DNA of 64,000 nucleotides from positions 5,642,001 to 5,706,000 of the forward strand of contig OZ059897.1 of NCBI GenBank assembly GCA_964057225.1, written 5' to 3'. Each line of letters begins with the position of its first letter. Positions within the stretch are counted from its first letter, which is position 1. Positions 12,889 to 29,382 of the stretch are shown in pieces. This DNA comes from Auanema rhodensis (lineage: Eukaryota; Animalia; Nematoda). Made by a program: the position numbers and the translations under genes. The notes beneath the pieces were generated by a model that had not been told where the DNA came from, did no database searches, and worked only from the letters and a program-made list of their open reading frames with translations.

Positions 12889-13623
12889 ATGAGAGTTTTA
12901 CTTCTAATTACATTTATTCCCATCATATTTTGTGGTACAGCCTTTGATGAATTACAAAATAGATATGTAACTCTTTCAATGGAGCTTGTAACAATATTCA
13001 AAAATCGCCCTGAAGTTACTGAAGCAGAACTTCATTCGGTAAGAAATTTTCTGTAATCTTCATGTATTTTAATTTTAGATAGCGAAAGCTGCCATTTTAG
13101 AAAACGATTTTAGTAAGAAACAGTTCAAGTTATTGGAAGAATTTGCTGAAAAAAAAGGAGCCGAGTTCCAAACGGCATTCAGTGAATCCTTCCTTGCACC
13201 TAGGTACACCATTCCTTCATTTTCATATAAATTAGGTTTTCAGACTTGAAAATCATGTATTAAACAGAATAAACTCTGTTCTTGGATATTACTTAACCAA
13301 AAAACAGATTGAGAAGGCATGTTTAAATCTTAGTTAATTCATCTAATGTGTTGAATTGAAGTTTCGAACTGTGGTTCTTGACCATCTTGGAAAAGGGCAT
13401 TCAAAGGAAGAAATTGTGAACAATATTAAGGCTAATATCGCTGAAGTAAGCTCATTCTATATATTCATGACTAAGCAATTATTTACAGGAACTGGGTAGT
13501 CAAAACGCAAGTAAAGCTGTGGATTTGGTTATGAAAGATTTGAAAATTCTTCACAAAATGTATTCAGATTTGATTGAGAAGCTCGATCAGCCTTTGGGCC
13601 ATTTTCTCAAAGACGAACTTTAA
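12889..13623 (+). CDS. Small helical protein with signal peptide and C-terminal KDEL (5 exons), family unassigned
   Basis: MRVLLLITFIPIIFCG signal peptide. The exons join in frame (intron 13317-13361 needs a GC donor) and end ...LGHFLKDEL* (TAA 13621-13623). Confidence 0.75.
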
Positions 13624-13840
13624 GCAAAAAATTGAATTTGTATTTGCTTGATATGTGTATATGTGGATATTTAACTCAGCAATTATTGTTCTTTCTAATT
13701 ATAAATAAAATATTATAAAACATTATAGTTAAGATAGTATGAATATAGACAGATATTCCTAAAGTTCGTGTATGTCCCCGAGCAACGTTCGTGTCATGAC
13801 ACCTTACTTCGCACTTCATTCGTATTAATTAAATCTAAAT

Positions 13841-16432
13841 ATATGGCATATTTCACATGACTGGATGTGGTATGTTGATAACCTAAGGATATTGTTGAAT
13901 TGAAGGTGTGAACATGTATTTTCACGGATATATCTTCTCATTCTTGCTTCATCCTCCACATAATCATCTTGTCCATGCTTCTTCTAATTTTCTACTCAAG
14001 TTTCTTCAAAGTTTTACCCAAATTTCTTCATTTTTATGTTAAAATTATTAAGAAACATGATGTATTCTATCATGATTTCACATATAAATCATATAGTTAA
14101 CATATATGATTTGACCGACATAGTACATACAACTTGACTTTTCTATTGTTTTCCTCATCATATGATCATAAAAGATTTTTTCTTTTTCATTATCTTATAT
14201 CCATAAATAGGATTAAACGATTTCCTTTGGCAATTCTATTCTTAATTCCGTTTTCTCTTTGATTTCATGCTTTTTACGGTCTGCCAACAGCATTTTCCCC
14301 TTTATGAGTAGCCGCAAATCTGTCGACCGGCTTAACTCTCATCAGGTCGTCCAACCCATAGTCTACGGAAGCAAATCACTTCTCATCAGTTGTTCCTCTT
14401 GTTCTTCTCTTAAGACCTATGCTTCTTCGTCTTTCTTTCCAAGAAATGTTCATTTGCTTTCAGATGAAAGGCCTTGTTTGGTCCGTCTTCTTTGTATTTT
14501 TCTCAACCATCGTCACAGCTGACGTCAACCCTTTTTCCTATTGTCGTGAAAGAGTCTTCAACAACTTCTGTGATTTGGAATGTGAAGATGAATTCTTACC
14601 GACCGGTGATTGTGATCTTTACAAGCCACCAACTGTAAGTTTGATTTCTTCTTTCATCAAATTCTTACTTTCAATTCAGATTATCCGGGATGTTAACTTG
14701 ACCATAAACAAGCTTCCATTGGTCTTTGCTAGTCGTCAGAGGTTTACTGTAATGCAATGGAGAATTCAGTATAAAGCTCGGATTCATATCTTGAGTGATC
14801 TCACTAAGATCAGTATCCCATCCAATGCTTTTGACAATGGCAAGGTAAAAGCCCATACATTCCACGTGGCTTTACATGATAATCTGGATTTACAGGATTC
14901 ATCTTCATTCCAATTTTGGATTTTGGTTCGTTTCGAGTCAAGGGCTTCAGAGGAAACATCTCCAATTCAAATCAAAGAAGCATTGGAATCCTCGCTAGTA
15001 GAAAGCGATCGTTCAGAATTTGAACGAATGAGAAGAGCCTCGGAAGAACTTCGTCTTCTAGTCGTCGTTTTGTTCCTCACTATGCTTTCAACTCTTGCTG
15101 CTGTTCTCGTTCTTCTCCGTACCAGACGGCGTCGTCCAGTCTGTGCTCCTGTATGGATTCCACCTATGGAGGACGATCTTAAGAGTAAGTTTACAAAGTT
15201 GATTTCAGATTTAATAGAAACGTGATTTCAGAATCTCCAGAATTGTTCACAACTGCTTCTTCTATCACATATCATAAAGCTATTAGCGAATACGATTATC
15301 TTCCTTATGGGTAAGTTCGTTTAAGTTTCTTGTCTATTCCAACTTGGTTAAAACAATTTTTTTGATCAATCTCTTCTTTCAGGGAGAATGGAAATCAGAT
15401 TCAGAGAAGTGGCAAACCTCAGAAACAACTTTCGTAAGTTATCCTTGTGTTTGATCAGCGTTCAATTCTTCTTTCCAGTTACCGGACTCCACAGCTTCTG
15501 GAAGTTCCACAAAGGACCCCTCTTCATTGGCTCGTGGACAACAACAGTAGTGAGATAACTTCGAACGAAAAGCTTCTGAAAATCGAAGAAATGGTTCAAA
15601 ATGGAATTCACATCAATGCTCAGGACGAAGACGAGGAGACTGCTCTCTTCTTGGCTGTTCGCTGCCAACGTCACTTCATGGTTTCTAAGCTTTTGAGTCT
15701 TGGAGCTGATGCTTCTATCATGAATCGTACTAACTCTACCTGTTTACATCAAGCTGCTCACAATATTGACGTGGAAATGATGGAAATTCTTTTGAATCAT
15801 AAGATTCTTCTGAATACAGTAAGCATTTACCAGGATAGTTGAAGAAATAATTTGAATTTCCCTCTAGGTTGTTGATGGTCGTCGTGCTATCGACGCAGTT
15901 GATGATACTGATCGAACTCCTCTTATGGTTTGTGCTGACAATGTGCTCTCCACCAAGCTTGTTCGTATGCTCATTGATGCTGGAGCTGATCCTGCTGATT
16001 CAGGAGATAAGGTTTGTTTCACCCAGTTTAGAGGCTTCTAACTTGATGTTTAATTGTAGGAATCAATCAAGTATACTGGAATGACTGCTCTGCATCATGC
16101 GGCTCAAACTGGCAACTTGCCAATGATCCAAGTTCTTTTGAACATTAGAGCTGTTAAGATCAATTCTTATGATCAACAAGGAGCTACTCCTCTATGGTAT
16201 GCTGTATCCAGTGGTCATTACCATTGTGTTCAAGCTCTTCTTAATGCTGGAGGCGATATGTACTCCCCAGATCACTTGGTTAGTTTTCTCTTCTCCTTCT
16301 TCTTCTTTTTCCTCCTGCTAGATCTTCCTTTTTCAAAAAATTTAATTTTTCTTCTTTTCAGGATCGTTTTCCAATGGACATTGCTAGAAGCAAAAGATTC
16401 ACTGATATAGAAAATATGCTCATCAGACATCA
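13841..16432 (+). repeat. Left arm of a 2.6-kb near-perfect inverted repeat
   Basis: Reverse complement of 23442-26027. Mirrored ORF coordinates sum to a constant 39868 (39874 after a 6-nt indel in the last intron). Confidence 0.97.
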
Positions 16433-16478
16433 GTTTGAAAGCCGTGTAAAGAAGTCTCGTCAACCTGCTGCAGCATAA
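14464..16478 (+). CDS. EGF-less LIN-12/GLP-1 (Notch)-family receptor, copy A, no PEST tail (~524 aa, 9 exons)
   Basis: Exons 14464-14634, 14680-14844, 14896-15184, 15232-15310, 15383-15433, 15479-15818, 15868-16011, 16060-16278, 16362-16478. Domains: signal peptide MKGLVWSVFFVFFSTIVTA; LNR-like CRERVFNNFCDLECEDEFLPTGDC; HD-like region; TM; RTRRRRPVCAPVWIPPME (RAM, cf. VWMPPME of LIN-12/GLP-1); ankyrins RTPLHWL, AQDEDEETALFLAV, CLHQAA, KYTGMTALHHAAQ. Ends KKSRQPAAA*. Confidence 0.9.
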
Positions 16479-17052
16479 TCCGCTTTAACTATGAATAGGT
16501 TCAAATATTTTTTGTACATATTAGAGATTATTTTTATTTTGTTTTCAATTGTTTTTTTAAATGAGAGCTTAACAGAGAATTATAAATATTTATTTGAAAT
16601 GAGCTTAGAGTCATGCACTTTGATTCATTGGAAAATCAGCTGTTACATAGAATACAAGATATAACTTTGACAATTTTCTAGAGAAAACACAAGATGATTT
16701 TGCGAGTTTATATAGTATATATTCGCTTCAGCATCTGAATCTTAACGAATATCTAGGAAGAGAACTTGGTCGACGTACAACCAAAATCTCTCATTCAAAA
16801 GAAAAATAAACATTTAGTGTACTCCTAACACTATATTAAGAGATTATATCTTAATTTTTGATGAAACTCATGAAATTCTTGAAAGAAGACTTCAAGCAGT
16901 TTATGAAAATTTGGGACACTTCAGAAAATACTTTTAAACATGATTTAAAAAATTTTTAAGATTTTTTCTGAATTCATTAGCGTTTTTTAACAACCAAACT
17001 ATATTTTTTCTAAATTTTTGTAGTTTGTCTGAGAAGGTATAAGGATTTTTAG

Positions 17053-18983: not shown

Positions 18984-19829
18984 ATTTACCATGACAGTTG
19001 AAGAAATAATTTGAATTTCCCTCTAGGTTGTTGATGGTCGTCGTGCTATCGACGCAGTTGATGATACTGATCGAACTCCTCTTATGGTTTGTGCTGACAA
19101 TGTGCTCTCCACCAAGCTTGTTCATATGCTCATTGATGCTGGAGCTGATCCTGCTGATTCAGGAGATAAGGTTTGTTTCACCCAGTCTAGAGGCTTCTAA
19201 CTTGATGTTTAATTGTAGGAATCAATCAAGTATACTGGAATGACTGCTCTGCATCATGCGGCTCAAACTGGCAACTTGCCAATGATCCAAGTTCTTTTGA
19301 ACATTAGAGCTTTTAAGATCAATTCTTATGATCAACAAGGAGCTACTCCTCTATGGTATGCTGTATCCAGTGGTCATTACCATTGTGTTCAAGCTCTTCT
19401 TAATGCTGGAGGAGATATGTACTCCCCAGATCACTTGGTTAGTTTTCTCTTCTCCTTCTTCTTCTTTTTCCTCCTGCTAGATCTTCCTTTTTCAAAAAAT
19501 TTAATTTTTCTTCTTTTCAGGATCGTTTTCCAATGGACATTGCTAGAAGCAAAAGATTCACTGATATAGAAAATATGCTCATCAGACATCAGTTTGAAAG
19601 CCGTGTAAAGAAGTCTCGTCAACCTGCTGCAGCTTAATCCGCTTTAACTATGAATAGGTTCAAATATTTTTTGTACATATTAGAGATTATTTTTATTTTG
19701 TTTTCAATTGTTTTTTTAAATGAGAGCTTAACAGAGAATTATAAATATTTATTTGAAATGAGCTTAGAGTCATGCACTTTGATTCATTGGAAAATCAGCT
19801 GTTACATAGAATACAAGATATAACTTTGA
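18984..19829 (+). pseudogene. Partial third copy of the Notch-like gene (last three exons + 3' UTR of copy A)
   Basis: Direct repeat of 15825-16670 (offset 3159) with a few substitutions (e.g. R>H, V>F). It has no start codon or 5' exons, but its splice sites are retained. Confidence 0.9.
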
Positions 19830-20657: not shown

Positions 20658-22527
20658 ATGGGATTTTTGCTGAAGTTGAAGCAATTATCTCTTTTCTTGA
20701 TTCTTGCCGTTGCTGCTAATTTTGATTATGGTTTCTCGTCTACTTATTTAAACAATCCAGTTGAACAATTCGAGGTTTTCTGAATCCCTTATGTTTTTTT
20801 TATTATTTTTTGAAAAGTATTCAGAATTATTTAAATGAATCGTTACGGAGAAGAGGGGATGTTATGACCGATGCGACATATAATTGGATATGGAATTTAA
20901 TTCTTAATATATGGTAAAGTTCATTCAAACATACTTGCTTATTGAAATTTCTTCCAAGGTTTGTTGGATTTTTTGTGGGAATTTGGTTTAGTCCTCTGCT
21001 AAATGATCGCTTCGGTCGTAAAGGTATCTACATTTCATGTCTCTGCTCTTGCTTCATCCAAAAATTTATTTTGAAGTTGGTTATATAGTTGGAAACGGTT
21101 TTGCATTGATAGCAGCTATACTTCGATATCTTGGAGTTATCTTATATATTCCTGAATTATTGTTTACTGGAAGATTCATCTCTTCAATTTGTATGGCTAT
21201 CACCTATCAATCTTGTATTTTATTTCTTCAGGTTTCTCACAATGTCGTTAAATTACATGAAAATATTCAATTTAAGGAATGTTCTCCTACAAATATGAGA
21301 GGATTTATGTCATTTTTATCGGAAATATCATATGCTATTATGTGCTTTGTTGGAGCAATGTTAGGAACTCAACAATTGCTTGGAAATCATCTCTCAATTC
21401 TTGTTCTTGTGCCTGTTCCATTGTGTACGTTTTCATATCAAACTATCCCATATATTTGGATTCGGATGCTTTTACCGGCTTACTGTAGTTTAGGTTTCGT
21501 ATTCTTAATGGTGTTGTTCTTTGTTCATGAAACTCCAAAGTTTCTCTTACTTGTTCGGAAGGATAGAAAAGGAGCTGAGAAATCTGTTATATTCTACCAA
21601 GGACAGAATGCTCCTGTACCGGATATTCTAAATGAAATCATATTAGTTAAACTTCAAATATAATATTAAATGAATATCTATTATTAATTTCAGGAAGCAG
21701 AAAATGAAGAAGAAACACCCGCAGCATTACAAGCTCTCAAAGAAATTCTTACTACACAACATCTTCGAAAAGCTGTATTACTAAGTTGTTGTGCTTTACA
21801 GGTTTGAAAACATAATCACATACTTCAATATTAATTTTTGACTTCAGAACACAATTGCTTTGTGGTCACTACTCCTTTCTTCAACATTTTTCTTGAGACA
21901 AGCTAATGTAAGCACAAGTCTGTCTGCTTGGAGTAGTACAGCTATGATGTTATCTTATGTCGGAGGAACATTACTTGGATCATCATTAATAGAAAGGTAT
22001 TTTTGATCAAAATAATTTCAAAAGAAATGCTCAACTTTGATAGAGTTGGTCGACGAGGATTGTTGCTATTTTTTATTTTTGTCAATAACTTGTTATTGAT
22101 TACTTTTGTTGCTTGTTCACAACTTCAAGTTGTAGCGGATTTCTTGAAATATGGATGTCTTGCTTCACTAATAGGTTATGGATTCACATATGGGTTAGTA
22201 TGAAAAAGAAAAAGTTCATTTTAATAATATATCTTTCTTTATAGCTCAGGAGTAGGTCCAATATCATGGTTCATCTCATCTGAATTAGTGCCACAGCGTT
22301 ACCGTAGCATGACGCAGTCATTCTGTTATGCTGTTAATACCTTATTTGTTGTTATAACAACATTTTCTATATTACCATTATATAATGCTATTGATTCATA
22401 TGCTTTTTTAATTCTTTATACATTGCCAAATATATTTTGTTTTATCTATCTAGTTAAAGAACTTCCGGAGACTCGTGGTCGTGAAATTCATGACATAGTA
22501 GCTGAATTAAGAGGTAAAGTACGTTGA
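20658..22527 (+). CDS. MFS sugar-porter (GLUT-like) transporter (multi-exon)
   Basis: NFDYGFSSTYLN, DRFGRK, LFTGRF, QECSPTNMRG, HETPKFL, ERVGRR, GVGPISWFISSELVPQRYRS, LPETRGR. Lies in the spacer of the inverted repeat. Confidence 0.9.
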
Positions 22528-28155: not shown

Positions 28156-29382
28156 TTAAGCAAAAAGAATTGTTTTTGAGATTGTAGATATTTGATTCTG
28201 AAGTGTTTCGGTAGGTGTGCTGTTATCGGTAACTAGATCATAAGCTCCTTCCAAATCAATACTCGGCCTATGACTGATTTGTAAAACATGTGGATTCTCG
28301 ACATCGAGAGATCTGAATGAATATGAATCTTGTCTTGAAACATCAAATTTAAATATTTAATTTTCAATTTGGAGTTGGTATGGTTTTGCCCACTCCCCCC
28401 TTTAGATTATCATTAGAGCGCATGCGTTTTTATTCGAAAATATAGTCTCATCTCGGCGAGTTTATTTCTTTTGATTTTTGTTGTAGCTCTCTCCATATCC
28501 CCCAGACCAACCGGATCTGGGATAGAGCACTCCCACTGGTTTATGAATTTAGATAATGAAAACGAAAACCTTACCTTTGTATATCAGAATGAGTTCCACA
28601 TGTAAATAAGCCAACTAGAACGATAACTATAGTTACAACAGAGAAGAGGATAACTGAAATTTTTATTTTAAAAATCCCAAATGATAATAAATATAAATAT
28701 TACCTAATAAATATAAGATTTTCTCTTGACTAATGTTAAACCGTAGAAGAATATCTGAAATTTCAAAGTTGAATTTTCAATCTTATTAGATGAGTTCTCA
28801 CTTTTTACAGTACAATTTTCTCCACTATATCCAAGAAAGCAAACTTTTTCTCCTGTTGGTGTGCAGTTAAAATATCCCTCCTCCTCACTCATTGAAGGTT
28901 TGCAGAATTTTTTACAAGCAGATCCGTAAAAATTTCTATAAATATAACAATATTGATTAAGAAGATTCTTAGAAATAGAATTACGGATAGCATTGTAGGC
29001 GATACTGAATAGACACTAGATCGCCAGCTATGTTAACATGATCCTCATTGAGTTCAGTGCTGAAATATTGTGGTTTCCATTTAGGTAAGCCATCCATTAA
29101 TAAACAATTTGTAAGATAATCATCAAAATCTTCCTGAAAATTAGAAATTGATTACAAAAATACATAAAAGACAATAGAAACCGAGTCCATAAACTGAAGA
29201 CAATGATCCATTAAACCTTCTGGAGTGAATATAGGTGGTTTGAATAAAATATTAAGCTGATATGTAGCCTAAAAGAAAAGAAATTAACGAAAATTATAAA
29301 TGTGAACACTAACCTCTATATATTTCAAAAAATATGTTTGAATTAGAATAATATAGTAGAAAGAATGACGTGTATTCATCAT
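28156..29382 (-). CDS. Transmembrane DSL (Delta/Serrate/LAG-2) ligand-like protein with no EGF repeats (~241 aa, 7 exons)
   Basis: Exons 29314-29382, 29182-29268, 28985-29133, 28802-28935, 28704-28754, 28575-28653, 28156-28312 join in frame. Signal-like N-terminus; DSL domain YRLQCYPNFYGSACKKFCKPSMSEEEGYFNCTPTGEKVCFLGYSGENC (6 Cys, DSL spacing); TM ILYLLVILFSVVTIVIVLVGLF; ~60-aa tail ending KTILFA*. Confidence 0.85.

Follow-up and report, generated by a model that had tools for sequence, protein, structure and literature searches.

Here, we report an EGF-less paralogue of the LIN-12/Notch family that is real, transcribed and selectively maintained, and that is present as two inverted copies (A and B) in the 64-kb stretch of DNA that was analysed (the window). 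Judged from its sequence, the product is best explained as a type I membrane protein comprising a signal peptide, a degenerate LNR-like module with two disulfides, a juxtamembrane domain of about 106 aa, a transmembrane segment (TM), a LIN-12-type RAM and seven ankyrin repeats (ANK), and the loss of all EGF repeats and of two of the three LNRs best accounts for this architecture. To our knowledge, DSL ligands need the EGF array to activate any of the Notch receptors studied so far, and Notch forms with neither EGF repeats nor LNRs are known to us solely from laboratory constructs or from cancer alleles. A conserved and expressed EGF-less Notch paralogue would let a tractable nematode test whether Notch signalling is ever ligand-independent in normal development, and would also test what makes up a minimal working negative regulatory region (one LNR plus the juxtamembrane domain).

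Copy A lies on the + strand at 14464-16478 and has nine exons (14464-14634, 14680-14844, 14896-15184, 15232-15310, 15383-15433, 15479-15818, 15868-16011, 16060-16278 and 16362-16478) encoding a 524-aa product, the interval 14464-15184 being the 5' part of the gene. The RNA basis of the model is a set of assembled contigs from four runs of one study, mapped over 13400-16700, in which seven of the eight introns of the model have a GT..AG joint; none was listed for the last of them (16279-16361), yet three contigs extend to 16432. The initial annotation had taken 14464-15184 as one exon, which the contigs of all four runs contradict, since they have GT..AG joints at a 45-nt intron 1 (14635-14679, +; joint 14634>14680) and at a 51-nt intron 2 (14845-14895, +). 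Intron 1 measures 46 nt in an orthologue from another species (L001, described below) and is hence non-coding. Intron 2 is open in frame, with no stop, and is 75% identical to its counterpart in the orthologue (introns overall 74%) with 9 of 17 codons kept, as against a protein identity of 96% in the exons that flank it. Exon 2, supported by RNA contigs and the gene model, encodes residues 58-112; these make up the first half of the juxtamembrane domain and include an NLT sequon (residue 63). Exon 3 encodes the second half, the TM (15055-15117), and the basic stretch and RAM (15118-15180), as assigned from hydropathy and PDB matches. The linker between RAM and ANK (residues about 216-263; omega 0.03) is encoded by exons 4 and 5, which are fixed by RNA joints, and exons 6-9 (15479-16478) encode the seven ankyrin repeats (15513-16433) and a short A-type C-terminus with its stop codon, on the combined evidence of Pfam, PDB and RNA.

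The mRNA of the Notch-like gene starts at a TTTCAG acceptor (14458-14463, +) with the ATG (14464) immediately behind it, an arrangement that had already been pointed out and that can be read in the sequence at 14458-14466. Contigs of three RNA runs end at 14458, 14464 and 14465; one 5'-end contig carries 27 extra letters that were not placed on the stretch, and another extends to 14458, with one letter mismatched and one left unaligned, as would be expected of the SL1 3' end (GTTTGAG) aligned on genomic CTTTCAG. From these contig ends and unplaced letters, TTTCAG is probably an SL1 trans-splice site. An in-frame ATG upstream, at 14419, falls outside the mRNA, and both the acceptor and the start are kept in the orthologue. 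In the contigs of the four runs, RNA depth is zero over 13733-14398, no depth is seen across the 730 nt upstream of the acceptor, and no joint enters 14464; distant EGF exons spliced to TTTCAG, which had been named as one outcome that would refute the reading, left no trace in the RNA contigs. The preceding + strand gene has its stop at 13625 and RNA contigs ending near 13680, and 838 bp separate it from the ATG. This neighbour (13489-13680, +) terminates in ..HFLKDEL, an ER-retention-type C-terminus, and its RNA contigs exceed those of the Notch-like gene three- to tenfold in depth.

No EGF-type module turned up in six frames of the 64-kb window, either with PROSITE-type EGF patterns or in a scan for open stretches rich in Cys; the region searched includes 14 kb upstream of copy A and 38 kb upstream of B. 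The 838 bp before the ATG contain neither an EGF signature nor an EGF-type Cys-rich open stretch, which bears out the earlier statement that no EGF-type Cys-rich ORF occurs in the ~840 bp upstream and extends it to the whole window. The EGF array of the Notch family is thus missing: no EGF_1 or EGF_2 signature is present and the mRNA begins at the signal-peptide exon. That exon 1 opens with a conserved, cleavable signal peptide further argues against hidden upstream ectodomain exons. With no EGF repeats, canonical engagement by DSL ligands would be impossible.

The intracellular half marks the gene, by its sequence, as being of the Notch/LIN-12 type. Hydropathy peaks in just two places, residues 1-19 and residues 166-186 (the TM), which together with an NLT in the ectodomain and RTRRRR inside indicates a signal peptide and a single-pass type I topology. 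RTRRRR (residues 187-192) is on the cytosolic side, and the RAM (residues 187-207) contains VWIPP at residues 197-201, with VWIP 11 residues past the TM, as befits a Notch-family RAM. A TM, a basic stop-transfer stretch and an intact RAM WIPP motif had all been recognised in the initial annotation, and for the RAM the PDB agrees: when the TM/RAM exon (168 aa) was compared with all PDB chains (phmmer), there were only two matches, the LIN-12 RAM peptide 3brd_D (E 0.011) and 2fo1_E, also LIN-12. In the RAM alignment (RTRRRRPVCAPVWIPPMEDDL vs RTRKRRMINASVWMPPMENEE), 14 of 21 residues around VW[IM]PPME are identical. The ANK region (residues 264-510, 247 aa) has the seven repeat units of a Notch-family receptor by inspection and Pfam (Ank families, E 1e-15 to 1e-16), and its first exon (ANK1-3) aligns with LIN-12 2fo1_E at 76 bits in one 98-residue stretch (query 11-108, chain 125-222) and with Drosophila Notch 1ot8 at 56 bits, which are its best and second-best matches in a single stretch. 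Designed ankyrin proteins were rejected as the closest relatives of ANK1-3, as they outrank LIN-12 only by summing many stretches of ~15-27 bits. Short pieces (RAM alone, 29 aa; exons 1, 7 and 9) gave either no PDB match or mainly designed ankyrin proteins, and a word-indexed search with the ANK exon gave no match in its length band. Beyond ANK, copy A ends after 14 further residues (511-524).

The ectodomain is a different matter. The ORF opens with the hydrophobic signal peptide that had been noted before (residues 1-19; 14464-14520, +), recognised by its hydropathy peak and a small-residue cleavage context (..IVTA/DV). Residues 20-57 form a module bearing four Cys and residues 58-163 the juxtamembrane domain of ~106 aa, in which the NLT at residue 63 is the single sequon; because intron 2 takes out 17 residues, the mature ectodomain is 144 aa long (residues 20-163), so that the short ectodomain of the initial annotation stands and its length of ~150 aa is revised. 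The LNR-like motif itself (residues 25-51; 14536-14616, +) has the spacing C-x8-C-x3-C-x9-C, with Cys at 27, 36, 40 and 50 and a GDC end. Among 24,736 Pfam families, the sole match of exon 1 is PF00066 (LNR), at E 0.061 and 14.2 bits, below the cut-off of 21.2, with an alignment that spans only profile positions 7-24 of 36. Accordingly, where the initial annotation had counted one four-Cys LNR, the four Cys are there and the LNR assignment is sub-threshold; in place of the three six-Cys LNRs of the Notch family there is one four-Cys module. In the Pfam register, Cys 27, 36 and 40 are the second, third and fourth LNR cysteines, and Cys 50, in its GDC context, fits the sixth, such that C2, C3, C4 and C6 would be retained. 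This register, of which Pfam covers three cysteines, is consistent with the proposed loss of the C1-C5 disulfide.

A further claim, that an HD-like region follows, finds no sequence support: the Notch-like protein has no Pfam match to NOD or NODP, the 106-aa juxtamembrane domain matches nothing in Pfam or the PDB, and the N-terminal 240 aa, compared exhaustively (phmmer) with 1.84 billion representative proteins, returned no Notch relative and only one orthologue fragment, 89% identical. A word-indexed search with the N-terminal part found the same single fragment, and P0002, a candidate relative of this part, was rejected as a low-complexity repeat. In a language-model feature search with the juxtamembrane exon, the nearest named Atlas clusters were SEA (mucin-16-like, Mucin-1), Collectrin, PCDH15_12th, KIAA1549 and MSB2_C, with scores (0.68-0.82) that lie below the level trusted by the tool's makers and make this a lead only. 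The lead deserves mention because the Notch HD is itself a SEA-like domain (PMC6586460), and the juxtamembrane domain is possibly a SEA-like HD. Atlas feature searches with the whole N-terminus and with the ANK exon gave generic results, and AlphaFold2 single-sequence models, run without an alignment, reached a pLDDT of 45 (N-terminal 240 aa, introns read through) and 44 (ANK exon), too low to be of use. A dibasic RMRR, replaced by RMKK in the orthologue, lies ~7 residues outside the TM (15028-15039, +); as a speculation, it could be a convertase-type site that leaves a stub short enough for gamma-secretase.

The orthologue from another species is a fragment on a 1.4-kb genomic contig (L001) from a separate sequencing project, with exon boundaries identical to those of copy A. 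Comparison of the two over 342 codons (Nei-Gojobori) gives a dS of 0.75 and an omega of 0.033, which points to strong purifying selection over the entire gene, the small ectodomain included. Omega is 0.027 in the ectodomain and 0.014 in ANK; the LNR-like module (residues 20-57, 38 residues) has 0 nonsynonymous and 12 synonymous changes, and the RAM has 0 replacement and 7 silent ones. The signal peptide stands apart, with an omega of 0.29 vs 0.03 for the remaining protein, and raised values of this kind are usual for signal peptides. Since the ectodomain is constrained to a degree comparable to ANK, it is no dispensable stub, which leaves room for a regulated mode of signalling.

The sequence of 13836-16438 recurs, inverted, at 26031-23436; the two are 99.5% identical and differ in introns only. 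Copy B, the inverted paralogue (25404-22874, -), encodes 627 aa and is identical to A through residue 505. The identity tract ends at 16432, and where A has a stop codon B has a splice donor to three further exon segments (23512-23402, 23356-23228 and 23059-22874, -) that encode a Ser/Pro-rich tail of 117 aa with no Pfam match. Beyond the shared tract only ~17 codons are still recognisably similar (16433-16478 in A vs 23441-23402 in B; ..SRQP..), a pattern that fits older paralogues homogenised by gene conversion. The loose RNA end at 16432 (three runs) is copy B sequence (23441-23412), and bin arithmetic on the contigs finds no RNA depth beyond 16432, on copy A's own 3' end; hence the RNA proves that A and/or B is expressed, and the 3' end seen is B's only. 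Upstream of both copies, LAG-1/CSL sites are no more frequent than in the window at large. A partial copy C (18984-19829, +), 99.2% identical to 15825-16670, comprises the exons for ANK4-7 together with the A-type stop and 3' UTR; no 5' exons could be recognised ahead of it, and copy C may be either a fragment or the 3' part of a chimeric gene. Pieces of a sugar-transporter gene (PF00083) lie at 21037-22524 (+), between the inverted Notch-like copies. A multi-exon gene with a DSL domain (PF01414, E 3e-10; 28707-28973, -) shares the strand of copy B and lies 2.7 kb upstream of it, and since the window holds no EGF signature this gene also seems to be without EGF repeats.

How, then, might a receptor of this kind signal? 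We tentatively favour, with a confidence somewhat short of even, leaky or constitutive shedding followed by gamma-secretase release, with transcription and the stability tail determining the output. Removal of EGF repeats and LNRs makes Notch ligand-independent, and the reduced regulatory region of the present protein would shield a juxtamembrane cleavage site poorly. An ADAM-type protease would shed the ectodomain, gamma-secretase would then cut more or less constitutively, and the freed RAM-ANK fragment would join LAG-1/CSL, its effect being set by transcription and by its own turnover, for which B would have the Ser/Pro-rich tail that A is without. The broader proposal, that the lineage uses a natural EGF-less Notch for ligand-independent, transcription-gated NICD delivery and that the paralogues differ mainly in their stability tail, is rather unlikely. 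If the ligand-independent reading is true, the gene would be a conserved physiological counterpart of oncogenic and engineered truncated Notch.

What chiefly keeps us from favouring the constitutive model more strongly is the constraint on the LNR-like module: very strong constraint here and in the juxtamembrane domain is no less in keeping with a specific, regulated function than with constitutive shedding. One such function, which we consider unlikely but a serious competitor, is that of a regulated receptor for something other than a DSL ligand, in which the LNR-like module and the juxtamembrane domain would form a minimal working proteolytic switch, opened by a non-canonical partner, and signalling would be gated. 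The ectodomain omega of 0.027 and the 38 LNR-like residues with 0 replacements against 12 silent changes favour it, and SEA-like domains can serve as switches even when the structured domain next to them is small (PMC6586460). The DSL-domain gene upstream of copy B, in a window with no EGF signature, could also point this way; against this, the ectodomain holds no recognisable ligand-binding module. In human Notch, moreover, S2 is masked by LNR-A/B together with their linker, and a single LNR is not known to be enough.

Another option, quite improbable in our estimation, is that the protein is a membrane-tethered antagonist which is poorly cleaved and dampens canonical Notch, either because its RAM-ANK holds LAG-1/CSL at the membrane or through competition for the protease. 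Gamma-secretase attack depends on ectodomain size, and a 144-aa ectodomain is long for direct attack, and the RAM and ANK are intact and conserved. However, a tethered RAM would seldom encounter CSL, a nuclear protein, and a RAM beside the TM together with a degradation-type tail in copy B would suit a released fragment better.

It is very improbable that the gene is an annotation artefact, with EGF/LNR exons that lie outside the window or were missed and are cis-spliced to TTTCAG. TTTCAG is also a consensus cis acceptor and the contigs are compatible with rare isoforms, but three independent contig sets end at the acceptor, exon 1 opens with a conserved signal peptide, the long upstream spans searched are free of EGF modules, and copies A and B have just 628 bp of upstream sequence in common. 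That the locus is a decaying partial duplicate of a canonical Notch gene is hardly credible, for in spite of the recent segmental duplication and the shortened copy C nearby, the frame is intact in two species at a dS of 0.75 and an omega of 0.03 and the gene is spliced and expressed, so that both the selection and the RNA data contradict it.

Our literature search found no EGF-less nematode Notch, the protein is absent from the public protein sets searched (exact look-up of the window's 268-aa ORF finds no record), and a metagenome scan for the Notch-like protein gave no match. Length filters in comparative surveys can conceal such genes. A survey of Notch-like receptors in 27 Caenorhabditis species reported 10-13 EGF repeats and removed proteins of < 700 aa before analysis (PMC6457397), and forms like the present one would thus go unreported. 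Among lineage-restricted extra Notch paralogues of rhabditid nematodes, the third GLP-1-like receptors of the Japonica group of Caenorhabditis are alike in their raised divergence and unlike in that they retain the EGF array (Stevens et al. 2019, PMC6457397). The juxtamembrane domain, in turn, resembles the SEA and SEA-like shedding domains (MUC1, PCDH15, dystroglycan and the Notch HD) in its size of ~100 aa and its position immediately outside the TM in a type I protein, and differs from them in its sub-trust Atlas scores (0.68-0.82) and in having no Pfam SEA match.

Compared with LIN-12 and GLP-1, the protein shares the type I membrane topology, a RAM directly after the TM (RTR+RR..VW[IM]PPME, 14/21 residues as in LIN-12), seven ankyrin repeats (ANK1-3 at 76 bits to LIN-12) and, in copy B, a Ser/Pro-rich C-terminal tail. 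In contrast, it has no EGF repeats vs 13 in LIN-12 and 10 in GLP-1 (PMC6457397), one four-Cys LNR-like module vs three six-Cys LNRs, a juxtamembrane domain with no detectable sequence similarity, and a length of 524 (A) and 627 aa (B) vs about 1300-1430 aa. Thus, on its sequence features, it is a Notch by its intracellular half that fails two defining features of the ectodomain, the EGF array and the three LNRs. In this it comes close to engineered forms such as N-deltaE, delta-EGF-LNR and lin-12(intra)/glp-1(intra), in which the ligand-binding region is likewise absent and the TM and complete RAM-ANK are kept, an architecture that signals without ligand in experiments. Unlike the short stub of these constructs, the ectodomain here is a constrained 144 aa, and the protein resembles rather a construct that keeps part of the regulatory region and whose activity is not predictable; and unlike any of them, the present gene occurs in nature, has two copies and is conserved between species.
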